DNA of 64,000 nt, from NCBI GenBank assembly GCA_964247055.1, contig OZ176050.1:11408001-11472000 (forward strand), given 5' to 3'. How positions within the stretch are numbered: the first letter of the stretch is position 1; each line of letters starts with the position of its first letter. Below, in pieces: positions 14,701 to 59,750 of this stretch. The notes beneath the pieces were generated by a model. That model had not been told where the DNA came from. It made no database searches and saw only the letters and a list, made by a program, of their open reading frames with translations. Made by a program: the position numbers and the translations under genes. The stretch is from Paragordius varius (Eukaryota > Animalia > Nematomorpha).

Positions 14701-17592
14701 TAATTAATGCAATAATAATAATAATAATAATATATCCACTATTTTGTTTGTTGGAAACTCATATTTTGCAATTCCATTTCTACGGGTAAAAAATTATTGC
14801 TCGGCAACACCTTATTATCTTAACCAATTGTCGTTAAATAGAATTGCTTTGAAGTGAAAAAAAGTTTGCATACCATTTATTCAAATCCACACTCGAACAA
14901 TTCATTCACCTTTACATAGTTTTTTTTATTATTAAAAATTACCAATATTTTTTTACATTTGTTAGAAAATAAAATTATGTTTATAATCAAAATAATATTG
15001 AAAATATAATAAACAATACCATAAAGATATATTTCTTATTTATGATGATTTATATTAGACCGAAAACACATAATTATTAGAATAAATATCGATTGTTAAT
15101 TCAATTGTTCAAAGGTGAATATGAATTATTCTCGTTCAAGTGTGAATTGAAATGAAAAAAGGTTGATGGCTAAACTGATATTAAATTCTTTAACATAAAT
15201 CAATACTTTTCTATCGTTGTTGAGGGTGTCGTCAAATTAACAATAAACCGTAGGAGCTCATTTAAGCTGGAGTAACCATAAGGCTTTTGGGTTCCAACAT
15301 GCTCTGTATTATGGTCTTGGAGAGCATTTTGCATTTTCTTTTGCATGTCTATAGCTGTAACTGGTATTAAAATATATATAACTATGACAAAATATCCATA
15401 ATGCAATAATATCTAGTAAAAAAATAAAAATTATAAATTAATACCACTTCTTAGTAACACCCGATAAAAACTACCGGATTATCCGCATAATCTTTTTAAA
15501 AACTACAATATAAAACTTTATAATAAAATTTAAATTATTTAATTAAATAGAGTAGTGATTCATAATATTCGCTATATATTCAAAAAATATTTTTTTGACT
15601 GATAATAGGATCTCAAAATGGTAAATAGTAATTTAGTGAAAAGAATTGCTTATTTATTTGAAAAAATTAAAACTTAAAAATTAAAGGAATATTAAAAAAC
15701 GGAAAAGTCTACAGCAAGAACAATTAATTTTTAAGCTGTTGTTTATTTAAAAGGTTTAGGCGGGTCAATACTGACGTGATCTGATGTTCACATATTTTCA
15801 AACATATAAAATATTATTTATTAAAAAATATAAATACTTGGAGTTAAGGCAGTTGTCTTATTAATATTATTATTATTATGGTAATGATGTATATTTTCCT
15901 CTGGCAATAATTCAATGTTCTAACATTTATGTGATAGAAAACTTTATTAGATTAATTACTTTGCATTTAATTATAATTAATATAAATTATAATATGTTTA
16001 CCGAAGTTATGCATTGGCCATCTGAATTATCATTTTGCATTTTCTAATGGACAAAACACATATTAAAATATATAATAATAATACCAATAATTAAATTTTA
16101 AATAATTAATTTATCATAAAACTAAAAAAAATATATTTAAAATATTTTAATAAACATTACATGCAAAGCATCATGAGTTAAATCATTAACAGTGTCGTAT
16201 ATGTGACTTAACATCAACATAAATATTTCCGTCAATGTATTTTCTGCATAGTGTCGCAATAGCTCTAAATAAATTATAAAAAATTTATATGTATATTAAA
16301 AATATGAATATATTTTACATCATTTTCCTGCAATTGCTATTAATTAACTTTATTATACATTTCAAAAAAATTTACGCATTTAATAATAGGAAAAACTATT
16401 CAGCACTAATGTTTTTTAGCGGAAAACGCTTACAATCCTCTAATACATTCTGGATGTCCGTTTTAAATAGAAAAGTACCGTGAAAAAATTATATTCAGTA
16501 ACAAAATCTTTTGGCTTTTACGTAAAATTAGAAAAGTAACATCTTTGAGTAAATGCGAGCATTTATTTTAAAAATTATAAGCATTCTATGTAATTTTTAA
16601 TTATATGCCAATTTTGAAACTAATATTAATTCCTAAAATATAGTATTGAAAAATCAAAACAGCCAACCAACCTCTATTCCAATTATACTGCTTCATGTCG
16701 AAATTTTAAGTAACTAACTCGGTTTTATAACCCTTAATATACTTATATACTGGTCCCAATTCTAACTTCAGTTGTGGTATTAAACGAAATAAAACATTAA
16801 TACAATTATTTAACAAATTCAGAGAATTTTAAAAATTAATATTAAATGACATTCTATGGAATAAAAATTTTGTTAGCAAAATTTTCTCAGTAAATGTCAA
16901 ACAAGCCTTAGACATAAAAAAAATCACCTGCTAAACGCATTTCAAAAGCTATCCGAAAAAAACTGTGAAGTATTCCACAAACGGCTTGATCATTTAGATA
17001 TGGTCCAAGAGGCGAGAAAAACAATGTTTTCATAACCTAGTATAAATATATTAAATTATGGTCATTCAAATATTTGATAATAATTAAAAAAAAACCTGCA
17101 ATATTTTTTGGAGAACAACCTCATCGGACGACGGATCAGTTCCAATAAAACGAGCATGAATCAAAGAATGTGCTATATGCTGAACAGTTTCCAATATATT
17201 AGGACTCCATATATCTGCATTATGATATATATGTTAAATTATACCAATCATATTATATTGTATGAATTTTTGTAGAGAAGAAAGTGCCAATCTTGTAACT
17301 GGCCCTGTTGTGTCTTCGCATAAAATGGCATCCAAAAAGGGGGTTAGAAAAACATTGTGGCTAACATACGAGTCTATACTATTAAATATATTAAACTATC
17401 AAATTTTTTCAAATGGTCCTTCAACCTTGTAAACTCTTTAAGGGTTAAATTATTTGCATCATCCTTAAAAAATAAATTTTTATAATAAACTTGATGTTGA
17501 AGCATGCTCCATTTAGTATTTTTCTTTAAAGCTGCTATTATCATGGCTATTTCACCGTTTACAATGTTAAAATATATTTCACGCGTCTCCAT
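1..17592 (-). CDS. GBF1: Golgi brefeldin A-resistance ARF guanine nucleotide exchange factor (DCB-HUS-Sec7-HDS), 3' end outside the window
   Basis: Manually spliced, phase-consistent GT-AG exons (high to low): 17491-17592, 17397-17463, 17245-17373, 17096-17214, 16928-17036, 16161-16264, 16002-16043, 15838-15919, 15207-15354, 14500-14647, 14059-14157, 13310-13498, 13090-13204, 12244-12701, 10971-11260, 10485-10608, 9934-10059, 9553-9699, 8766-9237, 7988-8330, 7306-7629, 6412-6920, 5958-6322, 4564-4660, 4252-4375, 3644-3904, 3141(or 3171)-3391, 2261-2794, 1918-1973, 1569-1824, 976-1146; tentative exons at about 600-727, about 200-437 and 1-82. Diagnostic motifs: [19 protein letters not shown] (N-terminus), [54 protein letters not shown], Sec7 catalytic [30 protein letters not shown]1 loop [44 protein letters not shown]. 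Confidence 0.95.
4392..4410. repeat. (TA)n microsatellite, just upstream of a GBF1 3' splice site
   Basis: Perfect TA run; the acceptor AG is at 4377-4376 on the minus strand. Confidence 0.9.
4817..5898 (+). mobile_element. Internally deleted hAT-like DNA transposon in a GBF1 intron
   Basis: Imperfect terminal inverted repeats CAGGGCTTGGAATCAGAACC (4817) and GGTTCGGGTTCTAAGCCCTA (ending 5898); several subterminal GAACC/AACCG motifs; internal ORF 5100-5282 carries [13 protein letters not shown], resembling the hAT transposase A-x-x-LDPRFK motif. The 8-bp target duplication is degenerate (atttaaac vs aataacac). Confidence 0.7.
6974..6998. repeat. (TA)n microsatellite
   Basis: Perfect TA run in GBF1 intron 6921-7305. 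Confidence 0.9.
8518..8702. repeat. Tandem duplication, about 102-bp period, two copies
   Basis: taaatcgataa...gggataa(t)tgcgtcgtgctgaaga...atgttttca.tgaaagttt occurs at 8518 and again at 8620. Confidence 0.85.
8723..8764. repeat. (TA)21 microsatellite starting at a GBF1 5' splice site
   Basis: The minus strand reads CCATTAC|GTATATATA..., with the donor GT at 8765-8764. Confidence 0.9.
11613..12233. mobile_element. MITE/foldback-like element with tandem 21-bp subterminal repeats
   Basis: The left end has about 2.5 copies of gtccttgaaca(a/t)ttcaagttg (11631-11685); the right end has about 5 copies in the opposite orientation (12110-12222). Outer ends TACCATTTGCA and TGTAAATAGTA are imperfectly complementary and flanked by TA. 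Confidence 0.7.
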
Positions 17593-46900: not shown

Positions 46901-47450
46901 ATATATTTTTCTCATTTAGAAAGTTTTGTAGATAATAGAGATCCTGATTTTAAAAATTGATATTTTACTTGATCAGTTCGCTCATTAGCATGCTTGGTGG
47001 TAATACTGATAAATTTAAATTTGGTTTTATGGTCTATAAACATTTGAATAAATGCATGTGGAGGCGTAAATGCTTTTTATTGTAAATTTTAATCTACCAC
47101 AAGGTAGTGAACAACAGGTATTTATTTGCAATATTTTATACCGCTTGTACCATCAATTTTAATTAAAATTATCGAATTGATAATAAATTTTGCTACTATG
47201 CTTTTTTACAAATGTTCTAATATACATCTTACCTTGATATATTTGCGAGTATCAAGGGTCAGTAAAAAGTATATTTTGAGATCAAAGACCTTTATGTTTA
47301 CCATTGTAGAATATATTAATAATATTATTAGTTAATTTTGATGATCAGTAGGCATGTATTATTCATAACAGGTTTATCATGTTGTTTTTGGTTTTGGCCC
47401 TTGTGATTGATTTCAGAAAGTTATTTACACTTTTGTGGTGATTGCTCCAT
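22886..47450 (-). CDS. RAPGEF2: PDZ-domain Rap guanine nucleotide exchange factor, RAPGEF2/RAPGEF6-like (cNMP, cNMP-like, REM, PDZ, RA, RasGEF)
   Basis: Exons (high to low): 47429-47450 (start tentative), 46969-47033, 46804-46943, 46656-46742, 46439-46514, 45689-46185, 42887-42944, 41993-42620, 41432-41627, 41006-41071, 40353-40722, 39872-40054, 39568-39675, 38992-39195, 38404-38512, 38074-38226, 37428-37488, 36939-37178, 36337-36516, 35653-35876, 33325-33485, 33140-33204, 32872-32979, 32197-32546, 31567-31823, 31180-31397, 30723-30901, 29600-29983, 29061-29171, 28664-28786, 28474-28551, 27986-28149, 27301-27460, 26731-26922, 26129-26350, 25635-25751, 25340-25402, 25021-25254, about 24650/24694-24819, 23833-about 24412, 23308-23379, 23082-23147, 22886-23013. 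Motifs: [62 protein letters not shown]...[26 protein letters not shown]...[22 protein letters not shown], RasGEF FWVVYEI...[12 protein letters not shown]...[18 protein letters not shown]...[24 protein letters not shown]. The 24.4-24.7 kb junction and the start codon are uncertain, and RAPGEF2 cannot be told from RAPGEF6. Confidence 0.92.
31883..31920. repeat. (TA)19 microsatellite
   Basis: Perfect TA run in intron 31824-32196. Confidence 0.9.
33950..35530. mobile_element. Degenerate DNA-transposon relic (Chapaev/CMC-like) with long inverted arms
   Basis: About 33950-34330 and about 35165-35530 are imperfect reverse complements (e.g. tatgccacata/tatgtggcata, gtcactcaagact/agtcttgagtgac). The plus strand at about 34970-35290 translates with stops and frameshifts to CFKN...[18 protein letters not shown]...[22 protein letters not shown], resembling the HLDFFPENLGAVSDEHGERFHQDI-type transposase. 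Superfamily assignment is from memory. Confidence 0.55.
34440..34790 (+). mobile_element. RTE-clade LINE 3' remnant nested in the inverted-arm element
   Basis: Translates to [27 protein letters not shown]...HDRTEW, like the RTE/BovB C-terminus LEKxIMLGKxEGxRxRGRPxxRW...DRxxW. Confidence 0.7.
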
Positions 47451-52415: not shown

Positions 52416-54487
52416 TAACATCACCGTTTATATCGTTTCCATCATGCTCAAAATAGTATAAAAGGGAATTTTACGTTTATTTTGAGAGAACGGTTAATTT
52501 TAAAAGAGCCAAAAAAATTGGGACTTTTAGAGCCACATCTAAAAATTAAAAATTTTTAAAACATTGTTTTTATATGGAGTTTATGTTATATTTTAGTGAT
52601 ATTTTTTGAAATTATACATTTAGCATTCACCAAAAAATATATTTGAAAAATTGCGCCCCTTTTGCAATTTTATACGGAGCACTTACTGTAAATAACTTTT
52701 TTTAATAACTCGTAAAGGTTCAAACCAAAAGCACCATGATAATCCTGATATTTTCCTATCAGAATATATATATATATATATATATTTCATCAGGATATTT
52801 TTAACTGTGGAATATTCCACACCGATGGTTTAAAAACAAGGCAAAGTATGTTTTAATTTTGTACTGCGTTCAAGTTAAAAATATCTGATCACATTACAAT
52901 AAGGGAATTTACGAAAGCCATGGTCGGGCAATTTTTATTAGCCCCCGTCCGCTCCTGATAAATGACTTTTCATGTGAAGTTTGATAAAAAATAATATTTT
53001 GAGGAAATTTCCTCCAAGAGAGTGGTTTTAGCCATTTCTATTGTAAAGGCAAATCTTTTATTTGAGTGCTTTTCTTAAATTAGATGCTGGGTAGGGCTCA
53101 ACCATAGTATACGCCACACCATGCATTGGCTTGAAAATTTTCGGAAACTCACCAGAAGGATTTATTAATACTTTAAGGTATTTCCTGTATAAAATAAAGT
53201 CCAGCGCTTTTATAAACCACTGGATAGGGATCCACCCTCTGACCATATGAAATTAATGTGGCTGATTCGGATTATGAGATTATATGTAAATAATGGTTTT
53301 AGATATTTCCGTATAAAGGCAAAATTGTTGGTCAAAATGACGGCCAAAATCTCAGACCTAGTAACAAGGCACAATGCCTACCGCAACATTGCAAAAATAA
53401 GAAAATTAGTGTAGTGTAAAATCCTTCATACCAGGAGATTCTAAACTATCTTTTTAGTTGAAAATTGAATTTAATGATCTCGATACACCCAATAGCTTCA
53501 CCATAGATTTGGTCGGCAAAATTATATAACAAATCCAAACAACCAATGGCAGTCAAAACGCGGCCCTTATTTAAATGGCCGTGAATTATTGAGTTATTTT
53601 TAAATTGCTATTAGAAATAACTCGTTAATTTTGACATTTATTTATTTTTAAGTAAATAATTTAGGTTTAGATATTTTGTGGTAATTTCCTTAACCCATAT
53701 AAATTTATTTTATTGAATTGGCTTTTTTGAAACCTTGGCGATTCGTTTTAAGCATGCGCGTTTTGTTGAAAAAGTCATGTATTTAAAACTGATTCCAATT
53801 TACGATAAAGAAAATCTTAAAAAATAAAGGTATAGTGAATTTAGGCAAGTTGTGTCAAATATGAAAATATAATAAAATATGAAATAATATTTCTTTTTCC
53901 CACACAAGTTATGCATGGATTCAAAAAATTTGCCTCATGATATTAAACCATATTCAAATTGTCGGTTAATGTTAAATTATGTGGCACAAGAGACATATTA
54001 GCTGGATGTGTATGCGACCCGCAAAAAATATCGGAGTATAAATATCTGAACATCACGATGCAACAACTGGCCTTGAGACAAAAAATATATTCGGGGCGTC
54101 TGAATTTTCGGTGTATACCACTCATCTTAACTATTGGAAATGGACATGTGAAATTTTACTATATTGTTTATTACATGTTAAAACCATTTTCTGCTATTAT
54201 CAAACCAACATTTAATTGTTAGCCTATATAACACAAATGATTTAATTTTTAAATATATACATCTAGAATAATTAGTGAAATGAGAATTGTCTTAAGATAA
54301 CAGGTAAGAAAATGTAATTTGTGTAAGGGAAACGCTGTTTTATAGTATTTTTCCCAACGTTTAAATAGTTAAAGAAACCGAAAACTACGTATTTGCTAAA
54401 TCAGCGAATAGCCAAAAAAGCTTTGTAAAAACCACAAGCATCTAAATATTATTAAAAAGCAATTTTAGAGATCATGTGAAATAAAAA

Positions 54488-57400
54488 TTAATAATAAGGT
54501 ATTAATTTATATATTGCTACACTTTCATCAAGAAGTGATAATGGATAAATAATGGTGGTTGATAAGTCAATAGTATTATTGTTGCTAATGTTATCCAATT
54601 CGGGCATATTCAATATATTTTGTAGTTTGTAACTGCATTGTTTCGCTTGACATTTGATTCCAAGTTTAGAATATGACAAGTTCATTGCCTCTTCCATATT
54701 ATCTTTTTTATTCCAAACAAATGAGTTAGGGTTATAAAACATCATGGCCCAAGCATGTGGCTTATATAGTCCAAGCATTTTAATCCAAATTTCAATATTG
54801 TGCTATGATTCAAATAAAATACATATAAACAATTTGTTTTATATATAAAAAATAATTTAGGTATGTTTGTGAGGTAAATTAAATCGCCCAATTAATGTAT
54901 AAATACCAGGAATGAAACCGGAAATGTTTTAGAATCAAAAGAAAAACTGAAACTATTCATAGTCCCAAATATATGATTTATTTTAATTTTTTACCATGTT
55001 TTATATTTTTGATTATATCAATTTTAATATTATTTAGCATTATAAAGTAGTACGAGTTAATCTCTATAATTTAACCAAATTTAGTGATGTAGCGTAATAA
55101 AACGTATATTGTTAAATTTTGCAATACTATCCTTTAGCAAATAAGATAGCGACCCCCATAAGTAACGGACACGAAATTATGCTGAATCCAGATGGAGAAT
55201 GCTTATATTAGTAATAAACAAAAAAACGAACAAAAAAATACGCCTGACCAATGCCAACCTAATCATATGGTATGAAAGATGAACAATGATGAAAGGGGGT
55301 GAGAAAAATTACAGCGTATGTATTTTTCTGTTGGAGAAAATCTTAACCTAACATGGAAGAATAGGATACCCCACCAAGACCTTTTTCTATAAATCATGAA
55401 ACAAAAGTTATCCAATATCGGCCATGTTATAAGTGGGAACTCCCAAAAAGTTAACGATTAAAGCAGAAAGCGAGCACCAATATGTGCTCGCTGGGTAGAT
55501 GACCTTTTTAAGTTCACAAATTCTCCCTACTAACATTAACACAAATGACATAAAATAGATAGAAATGGATGAAATATTCATATGATATTACTCAAGATTG
55601 GCAACTACTGTAAGCATAAAATCAAAAAAGTATTTTTATGATATTTTTTAAAAAATGTAGCATCCAAATTTTTTGCAAATTATTTTAAAGATTATTTTAG
55701 TTGAAACATGTCAACTGTATTAATAAAAATATTAAACCAAAAATTCAATAAAGTGCAACAAATGTTTAAAGTGGGTACATAAAAAATGCTCCACTTTAAA
55801 AAGTTTATATGATAATAAAAACTTTATTTGCTCTCCGTGCAGTACAACAAACACAATAACCATAAAATCTCCTTCCCCCGAGTCCTCCACTTTATTCGAA
55901 TTTGTCGACAAATTTACATACCTAGGTGATACTTTAGATGCTGGTGGTGGTATAGAATCAGCCTTATATCAAAGCCGCCTGGAAAAAGTATCATATACAG
56001 TCTTATTCAACCAATAAAAAACAAAAAAGGCAGACTTTATAAAACCTGGCAATCCACCATTCAAGAAGACCTAGATTATCTCAATATCGACGAACAAGCA
56101 GAAGACAAAAACAAATGGAAAACTACACGCTTACCTCCTTTGAAAGGAGAAAATAGGGTATAAAGGTGATATAAACCAAAAAAACTATATTATGAAATTA
56201 TGGAACCAAAACCAGATACATTTTTTAAAAAATATTTAAAACCGTCTCCGTAACCATTCAACCAAAACTGTTTACAAAAACATTATGTGTTAAAGAATCG
56301 AAACAAAAAATGACTTAGTTGAACGGTACCGGTTCCGATCCCTTTTAACATCCAATATTAACTAAAGAATGAAAATAAATTTTGATAAACTTTATAAACT
56401 CTGTGGCCCATGTAACCAAGATCGTCTTGATTCAATTCAATGAGTTGCTTATGTTGTAAGATTTCGACAGTTTTTGCATCCAATGCCTCAACATCATTAG
56501 ACATGATTAATGGTACGGACATAAAAGACCAAATCGCCATTTGTGTTAACATTTGATTGTAATTCATCCCTGAATTCCCAATAACCAGCTAAAATTATTT
56601 TGATAAAAACGTTTAAAAATTTATACCATGTCAAATAACATAGGCAATTTTTGGGTAATTGGTTATCATGTCTTGAAAAAATTTTAATCAGTTATGAAAA
56701 AAATAATTACACATCAAAAGTTTCTAAATCAAAGGAGCTAAAATAATATTGTCAATATTCAATGTTTTAATTCATAATATTAATTTATCAGTGTTTAAAA
56801 CACAGTGTGCTACCATTTTTCCTAACATCATTACATCCAAAACATTATATAAAAAATAAAATTCGTAGAATCAATAACGAGAAAAGTTTCGGAGGCCTAA
56901 TGAATGCAAACAATTTTTTCGTATTATCATCTTTTTTGATATAGAAAAATGTTTTAAAAATTTTATTTATACTTGATCAGCATCAAACCAACGGTTCGGT
57001 CCGTGATAAGGTACAAATGTGTGTCCATACTCACTGTAATACCTTATGATACCGCTAACACTTGGCCAATTGGTAGCAATGTCATAAAAGTTACGCCAAG
57101 TATGAGCATGTTTTCCAATATACCTATAATCAGGCTAAAAAGATATTTAAAATAAAAATAAAATTAAATTTTTGTAAATGTATTTGATGTGGTCTGAAAC
57201 ACAGTAAAAATAAATTTAAACCATTTTTTTTAATAAAGATAATCATACCTTTTAAACTTTAATTTTCTCTATAAAAACTATATAAATATATTAAATTTAA
57301 TATATGAGTGTAACAATTTACTTCTCTATTTCCCATGCAAAAAAACGATGAGTTATATTTGATCAATATTTTAAAATGATTGTCTTTTAAAAAAACATTT

Positions 57401-59352
57401 ATCGATCAAAATTTTTACTGTCAAGCTTAATATAAAACATACAAGCATTGTAAAAAACCAAACTTATCAAAAGAATGCAATAAAGTGATATATTTACCTG
57501 AATGTGAGCAAGAAACTGATAAAATGGCCAGCTAAAAGAGTAAACCATATTTCTACCGGTTTTATTCAAAAAATAGCTCATCATTGCATAACCTATAAGT
57601 AAAAACTATATCAAGCATTTTTTTAAATAAACTATTTCCAATAATTAAAAATATCTCCAAATTATTTTATTTTATGTTCTCATTATTAAATTTATTTTTT
57701 TCAGATTAAATAAATTACCAAAAACAACCGAGTAAATTTAAATATAAGCTTATTCAGGCGAATTATATTGTAATGTATTCACATAATTATATATAAATTC
57801 AATAATTTCACGTTTTTAGCATTTTAAAAAATGATATGCGCATTTACGACGAATTTATACATTCCACATTTACTACTAATTTGCATTTTAGTTATTTAAG
57901 TGTTAATATTACTGACAAAAAAAAAACGAAAGCAATATAACACATATCTCGCATAATTGAACAAGAAATACATGAATTAACCCATTTTTCTGTTTTTAAA
58001 TCACATTACAAAAGTTTATGGATAGAAATGATTAAAATACGATTAACTAAAACAAAACTAAAAACCAGTATCCATTAGAGTAGTATCTGTGAAACAACCA
58101 TCAACCTTGATAAAATCAACGTGCCATTCAGCCATAGTGAGCGCATCGATTTCCATTGTGTGCATTGAACCCGGGGTATGTCCCATACAAGTCGTTTCAC
58201 CATAACTTAGGTAAAGGCCAAACTTTAAACCTAGTTTATGGATCTGTAATACAATATGGCTATGTACATTAAATATTAATAAATTACAGACAAACGTAAA
58301 ACATAAAAGACAAATATCTTTTAAGGAGAAACCAATAAATTATTTTTTTTAATATAACTTATCGTTTTGGGTCGCAAAATAGAGAATAGCCAAGTAATTA
58401 TGCCTGAACTCTAATAGTTTAGTAATGGAATTATAGAGGGAAAAACCAAGGTTAAAAAGTATGGTTTTCCTTTAAGTTTTGTATTTATATTCAATTTTTG
58501 CATAGCTTGTTACAAATTTTTCATATGAAACTGTGTAAAATTAATATTTTTACCCTTATTTTATCCACTTTAATTTCGTTAATATTGCAAAATATCGGTT
58601 ACGCTCTTAAGAAACTAATCAATCAATTAATTTCATATAGAATAAAATCCAAAAATATTATTTAAGTCATTTATTATCTAAAAAGTACATATTATTGAAG
58701 TTTTAAAAAAGCTGAATTTTTTATCTCAACTGAATCAAAGTTCCAAAAAGAATGATCTAATTAGCTAAATATATTTTTTTTATTTTATGCACAAGTTTTG
58801 CGAAAGCATCAAAATATATAAAATAGATAATCATTCAATAATTTAACATTAGAGTTTTTTACAAGTTATATTTTTTTTAAAAAATTGTTATCTATATTTT
58901 TTATTTAAATATCAATTATTTATTTTAATTACGTGATCTGCGATATATTTCATCCCATTTGGAAAACGCACAGGATCTGGAACAAGTTTGCCTAAAGGAT
59001 CTCTGGACTTTAATGCCCAACAATCATCAATACATATATATTCATAGCCAAATTTTAAAAAGCCACGATTTATTATCGAATTAGCAGTTTTAATAAAAAG
59101 TTTTTCGCTATAATTAATTATTCAATACCTTATACAATTGTTAGGATCATTCTGACAATCAATATTACACATATATTTTCCCCAGGCCATCCAACCCATG
59201 GGGGGTTTTTTAGCGCTATCAGCCTTAAAACCCTGACTACATTTACATAACAAAAGCACTAAACAAATCTTAAAAATATACAGCTTGCATGTGCTTTCGA
59301 CAAGATCCAAATGGTGTAGTGATTGAATAACACTTGGATACAACACATTCAT
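54488..59352 (-). CDS. NAGA: Glycoside hydrolase family 27, alpha-N-acetylgalactosaminidase/alpha-galactosidase, about 448 aa
   Basis: Exons 59129-59352, 58933-59107, 58066-58243, 57498-57592, 56973-57134, 56391-56588, 54488-54802 (1347 nt, phase-consistent). Motifs PPMGWMAW, CNIDCQNDPNNCIS, YICIDDCW, DPVRFPNGM, IHKLGLKFGLY, IKVDGC (nucleophile Asp), WRNFYDI (acid/base Asp), QMAIWSFMSVPLIMSND, NQDDLG. The start codon is uncertain, and NAGA versus GLA specificity is uncertain. Confidence 0.92.
55240..55510 (+). mobile_element. Degenerate RTE-type LINE 3' remnant in the last NAGA intron
   Basis: Fragments resembling CWRKIL..TW.NRI, KQKLSNIGHVI and RWVDD. Confidence 0.6.
55885..56165 (+). mobile_element. 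Internally deleted RTE-type LINE remnant
   Basis: EFVDKFTYLGDTLDAGGGIESA joined to KKGRLYKTWQSTIQEDL...AEDKNKW. Confidence 0.7.
56185..56343. mobile_element. Solo hAT-like end
   Basis: Ends GGTACCGGTTCCGATCCCT (reverse complement AGGGATCGGAACC) with several subterminal AACC motifs; the partner end was not found. Confidence 0.4.
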
Positions 59353-59357
59353 TTTAG

Positions 59358-59392
59358 TCCTTCGATAAATTGGGGTAGTTAAATACCCCAGG
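59358..59392 (+). mobile_element. piggyBac-like terminus, copy 1
   Basis: TTAG|TCCTTCGATAAATTGGGGTA-GTTAAA-TACCCCA, a subterminal palindrome and a direct repeat of 59937-59972. Confidence 0.45.
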
Positions 59393-59750
59393 CCTGTTTA
59401 GAATTAAATTTTTTAAAAATATGAAAGGAATCGAAACCATTACAAAATTGTGCACTTTTATAAAATTAATAAACCGAAATTGTAAAAAAATTATATTCAA
59501 AAATACTTGATATTACTTATTTTAAGCTAAAACCGAAAGGTAAAAATTTAGTCAACGTGACATGTGTGCAATGGTAAAATGGAAAAATAATACAAAATAA
59601 ACCGCTTTTTCTATTTTCATCAATGTTAGATATAATTCATATAAAAAATAAGCTTTAATTTTACCCTTAAAATAAATGAAGACGATATTTTGCAAAATTT
59701 TGGCAAAATAAAAATGGCGTCTAAGTAGTTTGAGATGGAACTTTTTTTTC

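Follow-up and report, generated by a model that had tools for sequence, protein, structure and literature searches.

A 21-nucleotide segment at a conserved intron site in a GH27 glycosidase gene of the hairworm Paragordius varius: a probable ultra-short spliceosomal intron

Can an animal spliceosome remove as few as 21 nucleotides (nt) from a transcript which also carries an intron of 1588 nt? This question is raised by a gene of glycoside hydrolase family 27 (GH27) encoded on the minus strand of a 64,000-nt stretch of the Paragordius varius genome (Nematomorpha; assembly GCA_964247055.1, contig OZ176050.1, positions 11,408,001 to 11,472,000). This whole stretch is referred to below as the window and all positions are counted from its first letter. 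Close to its 5' end, the reading frame of the gene is interrupted by 21 nt containing a stop codon, and a preliminary description of the locus regarded the segment as an obligatory spliceosomal intron. The data presented here indicate that the segment is very probably a genuine ultra-short spliceosomal intron of the U2 type, which makes it one of the shortest introns proposed for any animal. The segment is as follows:

59108..59128, minus strand: intron 1, 21 nt, GTATTGAATAATTAATTATAG, phase 2, splitting a Ser codon (AG/C), 14% GC

The reading of the minus strand around the segment gave ...aattgtataag/gtattgaataattaattatag/cgaaaaactt..., with the segment placed exactly at 59128..59108, and the coordinates, sequence and frame logic given in the preliminary description proved to be exact. 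The segment is bordered upstream by ...AATTGTATAAG and downstream by CGAAAAACTT.... The upstream frame is open from the ATG at 59352 and ends with ...KKPPMGWMAWGKYMCNIDCQNDPNNCI. On the other side, a single base (C, 59107) is followed by 58 open codons, EKLFIKTANS...GMKYIADH, up to a GTAATT donor at 58932. Reading through the segment produced C-I-R-Y-stop-I-I-N-Y-S-E-K-L-F, with the in-frame TGA located at intron bases 5–7, as anticipated earlier for retention, and without the 21 nt the product is ...NNCI-S-EKLF.... The ends of the segment on the coding strand are GT (5') and AG (3'), in the form GTATTG...TATAG, again as described before. A deletion of 21 nt can be placed here in three ways yielding an identical product, and only one of the three has the form GT...AG. 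By our arithmetic, a random insert of 21 nt at the ~27% GC of the window would show GT...AG in one of its three placements with a probability of ~0.7%. The U12 type was ruled out, as there is no ATCC-type 5' site.

The gene consists of seven exons on the minus strand and all six introns have GT-AG ends, with lengths of 21, 689, 473, 363, 384 and 1588 nt. The sister introns of the 21-nt segment, for which about 360–1600 nt had been stated, thus measured 363–1588 nt. The remaining parts of the gene model are:

59129..59352, minus strand: exon 1, 224 nt with the ATG at 59352 taken as start; a signal-peptide-like stretch, then KKPPMGWMAWGKYMCNIDCQNDPNNCI
58933..59107, minus strand: exon 2, 175 nt, equal to exon 2 of Gordionus and Saccoglossus
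58244..58932, minus strand: intron 2, 689 nt, GT-AG, phase 0
58066..58243, minus strand: exon 3, 178 nt, with KVDGC containing the catalytic nucleophile Asp
57593..58065, minus strand: intron 3, 473 nt, phase 1, within the Gly codon corresponding to human Gly183
57498..57592, minus strand: exon 4, 95 nt
57135..57497, minus strand: intron 4, 363 nt, phase 0
56973..57134, minus strand: exon 5, 162 nt, with WRNFYD containing the acid/base Asp
56589..56972, minus strand: intron 5, 384 nt, phase 0
56391..56588, minus strand: exon 6, 198 nt
54803..56390, minus strand: intron 6, 1588 nt, phase 0, with raised-depth repeats at about 55692–56213
54488..54802, minus strand: exon 7, 104 codons and TAA, C-terminal domain

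The exons were searched one by one, not as a joined protein, and every exon matched GH27 enzymes. Exons 1–4 and 6, which were covered by the Pfam scan, each scored 25.6–58.5 bits against PF16499 (cut-off 23) and exon 5 matched solved GLA/NAGA chains. The KVDGC motif aligned with KLDGC of human NAGA and WRNFYD with WRNYDD of chicken NAGA. The GH27 identity assigned in the preliminary description was therefore upheld by PF16499 and the solved chains. Its label "NAGA-like" (rather than GLA) is plausible with respect to the predicted substrate specificity, as the sequence S-W-P-F occupies the positions of human GLA Glu203/Leu206 (Ser and Ala in NAGA), the Ser being NAGA-like and the second residue a bulky Phe.

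The exons on both sides of the segment left room for exactly one residue. The upstream exon matched positions 2–26 of the PF16499 (Melibiase_2) profile and the downstream exon positions 28–84, both above the gathering score; in the Protein Data Bank (PDB) chain 1r46_A, they matched residues 6–33 and 35–91. The upstream exon ended at chain residue 33 and the downstream exon began at residue 35 not only in 1r46_A (human alpha-galactosidase A) but also in 3h53_A (human NAGA) and 1ktb_A (chicken NAGA). The single residue absent between the flanks is thus supplied by the split Ser codon AG/C, and the CIS-E(K)LF junction, earlier claimed to be restored by removal of the segment, was found gap-free in its flanks relative to Pfam PF16499, human GLA, human NAGA and chicken NAGA. 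A tblastn comparison of the homologous protein from the hairworm Gordionus with the window showed a clean seven-residue gap opposite RY(stop)IINY.

Residue numbers in 1r46_A are lower by 31 than those of the precursor, as shown by the run A-R-T-P-T-M-G, which agrees with the variants named P40S, T41S and G43V, and chain residue 34 consequently corresponds to precursor Ser65. The human GLA variants c.194+1G>T, listed under "1i" (PMC11610007), and c.195-1G>A (PMC10671142) show that intron 1 of this gene separates c.194 from c.195 and splits codon 65 behind its second base. The 21-nt segment is therefore located at the same site and in the same phase 2 as human GLA intron 1 (c.194/c.195). Exons 3–6 of the hairworm gene start at chain residues 93, 153, 183 and 237 (precursor 124, 184, 214 and 268), which fits the human junctions c.547/548 (c.548-1G>C) and c.639/640 (c.639+761 and c.640-363 in "intron 4"). 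The mapped exon starts also fit c.369/370, c.801/802 and c.999/1000, which we take to be human GLA junctions as well, with human exon 2 presumably 175 nt long.

An alignment of intron positions with orthologues, proposed in the preliminary description as a check, placed an intron at this site and in phase 2 in three further animals besides the human gene. In Gordionus, intron 1 is 42 nt long (OX940784.2:47720761–47720802, L001 4165–4206) and located at NACI/NEKLF, with an in-frame TGA directly after the donor. In the hemichordate Saccoglossus, an 889-nt intron was found at DPDNCI/GEKLF, followed by a 175-nt exon, and in the rotifer Brachionus, a 64-nt intron was found at FPDECI/SEKLI. The introns at this site thus measured 889 (Saccoglossus), 64 (Brachionus), 42 (Gordionus) and 21 nt (window). 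No intron was present at the CI/x-EKL site of the Caenorhabditis bovis homologue and the GH27 gene fetched from Nematostella was intronless. From these comparisons, the intron site dates to at least the last common ancestor of bilaterians. Given the site and phase shared across species, the 21 nt are best read as an ancestral intron that has shrunk.

Two observations concern the homologues from the latter species. The C. bovis model (CADEPM010000001.1) comprises 702 amino acids and contains a mitochondrial-carrier gene in addition to the GH27 gene, the two having probably been merged during annotation; 13 of its 15 introns are 39–55 nt long. The Nematostella vectensis homologue (DS469569.1) encodes 386 amino acids in one open frame and may be a retrogene.

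The closest homologue was obtained in an exhaustive protein search with exon 2. It was CAK9297103.1, a protein of 435 amino acids from "Gordionus sp. m RMFG-2023", taken here as Gordionus montsenyensis. It is ~51% identical to the exons in the window and was the best of 274 fetched proteins compared with the locus by tblastn. Nothing closer was found in word searches with exon 2, with the 76-residue open reading frame ending in the TGA of the intron and with the Gordionus protein, or in the exhaustive search of representative proteins with exon 2. The Gordionus locus (L001, OX940784.2) has exons of 164, 175, 178, 95, 162, 198 and 333 nt and introns of 42, 58, 274, 1790, 601 and 411 nt. The lengths of exons 2–6 (175/178/95/162/198 nt) are identical in both hairworms and all six intron positions are common.

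The Gordionus gene also illustrates what a micro-intron at this site may do to gene models. The RefSeq protein XP_065314267.1 begins with MGEKLF, and the model has lost the signal peptide and the first 54 residues. We infer that this start arose by joining a consensus GTAAGT donor within exon 1 (after L001 4112) to the acceptor of the 42-nt intron, giving ATG-GG/C-GAG-AAA and an alternative intron of 94 nt. In the submitters' model CAK9297103.1, guided by RNA sequencing (RNA-seq), the 42 nt are spliced out. Micro-introns can evidently derail standard annotation in Nematomorpha. The RefSeq isoforms of the Gordionus homologue are N-terminally truncated (L001 4001–4210), and a second submitter model, CAK9297102.1 (402 amino acids), lacks exon 4. 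The Gordionus assembly has 26.93% GC and a BUSCO completeness of 71.6%.

The segment was also present in sequencing data independent of the assembled contig. A contig from run X5 (record 28; S3, a further sample of the same study) spanned 58922–59313 with 14 substitutions and no gaps, and one from run X3 (record 16; another study and organism label) spanned 58974–59305 with five substitutions and no gaps. Both extended over more than 130 letters on each side of the 21 nt. As these contigs bridged the segment without an indel, an assembly error was excluded. Over the long introns, each listed contig of the diverged lineage carried 5–17 gaps, and the 21-nt length is stable across lineages differing by several per cent. 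The X4 and X5 contigs at 54484–58574, which bear the organism label and study of the best-matching run, differed from the window by ~4–7% with many indels in introns and originate from either another haplotype or a cryptic sister lineage. In run X3, which has the other organism label, the difference from the window was smaller (~1.5% over 332 nt).

The gene itself is intact. About 445 codons in seven exons contain no stops or frameshifts, at a base composition (~27% GC in the window) at which about one random codon in twelve (~8%) would be a stop. Among the exon 7 differences listed in the diverged lineage, 7 of 12 were synonymous and the other five mostly conservative, which is weak evidence pointing towards purifying selection on the GH27 gene.

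How the segment might be removed can be proposed from its signals. The 5' site reads AAG/GTATTG and the 3' site is a bare TAG, essentially lacking a polypyrimidine tract, a feature shared with other animal ultra-short introns that is not in itself positive evidence. The TTAAT motif pointed out in the preliminary description is present at intron bases 12–16, with its second A located 6 nt before the last G, although its chance occurrence is to be expected at such a high AT content (14% GC). The branch adenosine would probably lie in this motif, at a distance of ~14 nt to the 5' site and of 6 nt to the 3' end. Recognition would proceed by intron definition in ordinary U2-type splicing with minimal signals, that is GTA..., an A-rich stretch and AG. 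As the segment has a length divisible by three and includes an in-frame TGA, its retention would truncate the protein, and we infer that splicing here is not only spliceosomal but also obligatory rather than optional. A transcript left unspliced would be truncated after 76 residues and probably destroyed by nonsense-mediated decay (NMD). Excision from the pre-mRNA would thus be required for making the GH27 lysosomal glycosidase, and the 21 nt would derive, by strong shortening, from the first intron present in ancestral GLA/NAGA genes of animals.

Several points weigh against this interpretation. Most animals splice introns far longer than 21 nt. The branch motif, like the bases of the 5' site after GTA, gives a weak signal that has no statistical meaning in AT-rich DNA. 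Among the sequencing runs containing the locus, none was recorded as RNA, and the four runs aligned to the locus all covered introns as well as exons and are thus genomic DNA. No transcript-derived protein of this species was found in the protein collections searched. A tblastx comparison of the 4-kb flanks between the window and the Gordionus locus gave no match, and orthology with the Gordionus gene, as opposed to paralogy, thus found no support in synteny. The predicted ATG is located inside a high-copy repeat, and the 5' end and start of the GH27 gene are therefore uncertain. Two runs with a word share of 0.2 had been taken as RNA candidates and were rejected, as their coverage of introns showed DNA of a lineage diverged by 4–7%.

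Some of these points could be explained by a recently dead pseudogene, in which intron 1 shrank below the removable length so that every transcript carries the TGA and no enzyme is made. The lack of RNA among the runs containing the locus, the position of 21 nt at the extreme lower limit, the ATG within a repeat and the lack of a protein of this species in the databases searched would all agree with this. Such an explanation is nevertheless unlikely, as the ~445 codons remain open despite the high frequency of random stops, the catalytic residues are preserved, the diverged lineage retains the 21-nt length without an indel and the listed exon 7 changes are mostly synonymous (7/12). It may also be that another junction is used in the mature mRNA, for instance from an alternative first exon or a different donor to the same acceptor, in which case the 21 nt would never leave the transcript as one piece. 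The MGEKLF start of Gordionus XP_065314267.1 would be a precedent, if our reading of its GTAAGT donor in exon 1 is correct. However, the signal peptide would be missing from the resulting product, as would the conserved stretch PPMGW...C..C..CI, whose alignment with the human GLA chain begins at residue 6. In addition, no GTAAGT occurs within exon 1 of the window and the RNA-seq-guided model of the submitters splices out the 42 nt in Gordionus, which makes another junction decidedly improbable.

The remaining explanations place the anomaly outside of splicing. The 21 nt might be kept in the mRNA, with the TGA read through, recoded as selenocysteine or bypassed, or they might be removed from somatic DNA; a length divisible by three would agree with this. 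Recoding, however, would add seven residues to a motif that aligns without gaps between human and hairworm; for DNA removal, no contig without the segment was found and the listed indel and joint rows were empty at the site. Neither would account for the GT-AG ends and the conserved intron site, and we regard both as very hard to defend. An assembly or sequencing artefact, or an insertion private to the sequenced individual, deserves hardly any credence: the only argument for it is the oddity of the segment itself, whereas the X5 (58922–59313) and X3 (58974–59305) contigs bridged the site without gaps.

Further candidates of similar size were noticed on the same strand in two other genes of the window, in both cases from reading of the sequence only:

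within 17215–17488, minus strand: three GT-AG micro-introns of 27, 23 and 30 nt in a GBF1-like gene
46944..46968, minus strand: a GT-AG micro-intron of 25 nt in a RAPGEF-like gene

Their make-up is like that of intron 1, AT-rich with the form GT[A/T]...AG, and the 27-nt and 30-nt introns of the GBF1-like gene carry an in-frame TAA. An in-frame stop was therefore present in each of the four examined micro-introns whose length is divisible by three (21, 27 and 30 nt in the window and 42 nt in Gordionus). By our arithmetic, this would be expected by chance in ~10% of cases in DNA so AT-rich, and it is only consistent with a quality control of splicing backed by NMD. A scan of the whole window based on open reading frames alone, for frame-restoring GT...AG stretches of 18–40 nt, returned 23 loci, compared with a mean of 33 over all dinucleotide pairs. 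As such a scan has no discriminating power in AT-rich DNA, no count of micro-introns was drawn from it.

Animal introns shorter than about 30 bp were formerly thought to be absent, and among 51 genomes, Hadjez et al. 2026 (PMC13644364) found introns of <30 bp only in myxobolid myxozoans (median 22–27 bp) and in Dicyema japonicum. In these ultra-short introns, the 5' signal is cut to GTA and there is no real pyrimidine tract, while the genomes keep canonical U2 small nuclear RNA and U2AF, and intron definition by minimal signals was proposed (PMC13644364). Nematomorphs are not mentioned in the text of that paper. The list of short-intron lineages in the preliminary description (nucleomorphs, ciliates and dicyemids) should be extended by the myxobolid myxozoans (PMC13644364).

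The segment resembles the myxobolid and dicyemid introns in its GT-AG ends and size (20–27 bp there), its conserved position between conserved exons and the few A residues upstream of AG. The animals concerned are parasitic, and a conserved position served as validation there and here. In contrast to these animals, in which the short class is the bulk of the introns and has short neighbours, the 21-nt intron shares its gene with introns of 363–1588 nt, and genome-wide miniaturisation of their type is accordingly not seen here. Moreover, junctions were confirmed there by long RNA reads, whereas the present case is known from DNA and concerns an ecdysozoan lineage.

Another parallel is provided by flatworms. 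Ershov et al. 2019 (PMC6530080) described two intron length classes in Opisthorchis felineus, with microintrons (<75 bp, peak at ~37 bp) clustered near the transcription start and often devoid of a polypyrimidine tract, and pointed out that they escape annotation software set to a high minimum intron length. The 5'-proximal pattern was found in both hairworms: in the window, the tiny intron 1 (21 nt) is followed by introns of at least 363 nt, and in Gordionus, introns 1 and 2 (42 and 58 nt) are followed by introns of 274–1790 nt. However, the flatworms belong to another phylum and their peak of ~37 bp is about twice the length of the 21-nt intron. Outside of animals, introns are ~25 nt long in Paramecium and 15–16 nt long in Stentor, and those of chlorarachniophyte nucleomorphs are tiny too. 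In Paramecium, in-frame stops are reportedly frequent in introns whose length is divisible by three, which exposes transcripts retaining such introns to NMD. The size range and the in-frame stops of the micro-introns in the window and in Gordionus recall these systems, a parallel that is only suggestive; the lineages concerned are protists, and their introns are tiny throughout. No discussion of introns was encountered in the hairworm genome papers found.

Intron 1 is a new case of the ultra-short spliceosomal introns proposed in animals, distinguished by its lineage, its deeply conserved site and the presence of kilobase introns in the same transcript. With chances that we put slightly above even, Nematomorpha would be a third independent animal lineage splicing introns of ~21–30 nt, and the first in which they form a separate promoter-proximal class beside kilobase introns; standard pipelines would mishandle such introns and the low BUSCO values of hairworms (71.6% in Gordionus) could be partly an annotation artefact. 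If RNA confirms the splicing, an ecdysozoan spliceosome can operate at a minimum size for which the only documented examples to date are myxozoans and one dicyemid, and can handle introns of 21 nt and of 0.4–1.6 kb on the same pre-mRNA. Miniaturisation could then strike single 5'-proximal introns, not the whole genome, and the gene would offer a natural system for studying the minimum intron length and the coexistence of intron and exon definition. The default minimum intron is ~20–21 nt for common RNA-seq aligners and ~39 nt for AUGUSTUS. With defaults of aligners and gene finders at or above 21 nt, hairworm gene sets, and conclusions on gene loss drawn from them, may need re-annotation.

Two repeats were observed at the gene. 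A very high-copy repeat adjoins its 5' end at 59328–59500, with a summed contig word depth of 1e5–1e6, compared with a few hundred in most neighbouring bins, and all four runs show sharp loose-end boundaries at 59328/59329 and 59366/59367. The predicted start codon (59352–59350) and the first eight codons are located within this repeat. In the window, it was found as a single copy at up to three mismatches, though the depth shows its very high abundance in the genome. The other stretch is located in intron 6 (55692–56213) and had a depth of 1.6e3–4.4e4, variable small indels and a 40-nt skip at 56021–56062 in three runs. This stretch probably represents a repeat family, or one of miniature inverted-repeat transposable elements (MITE), with length variants.

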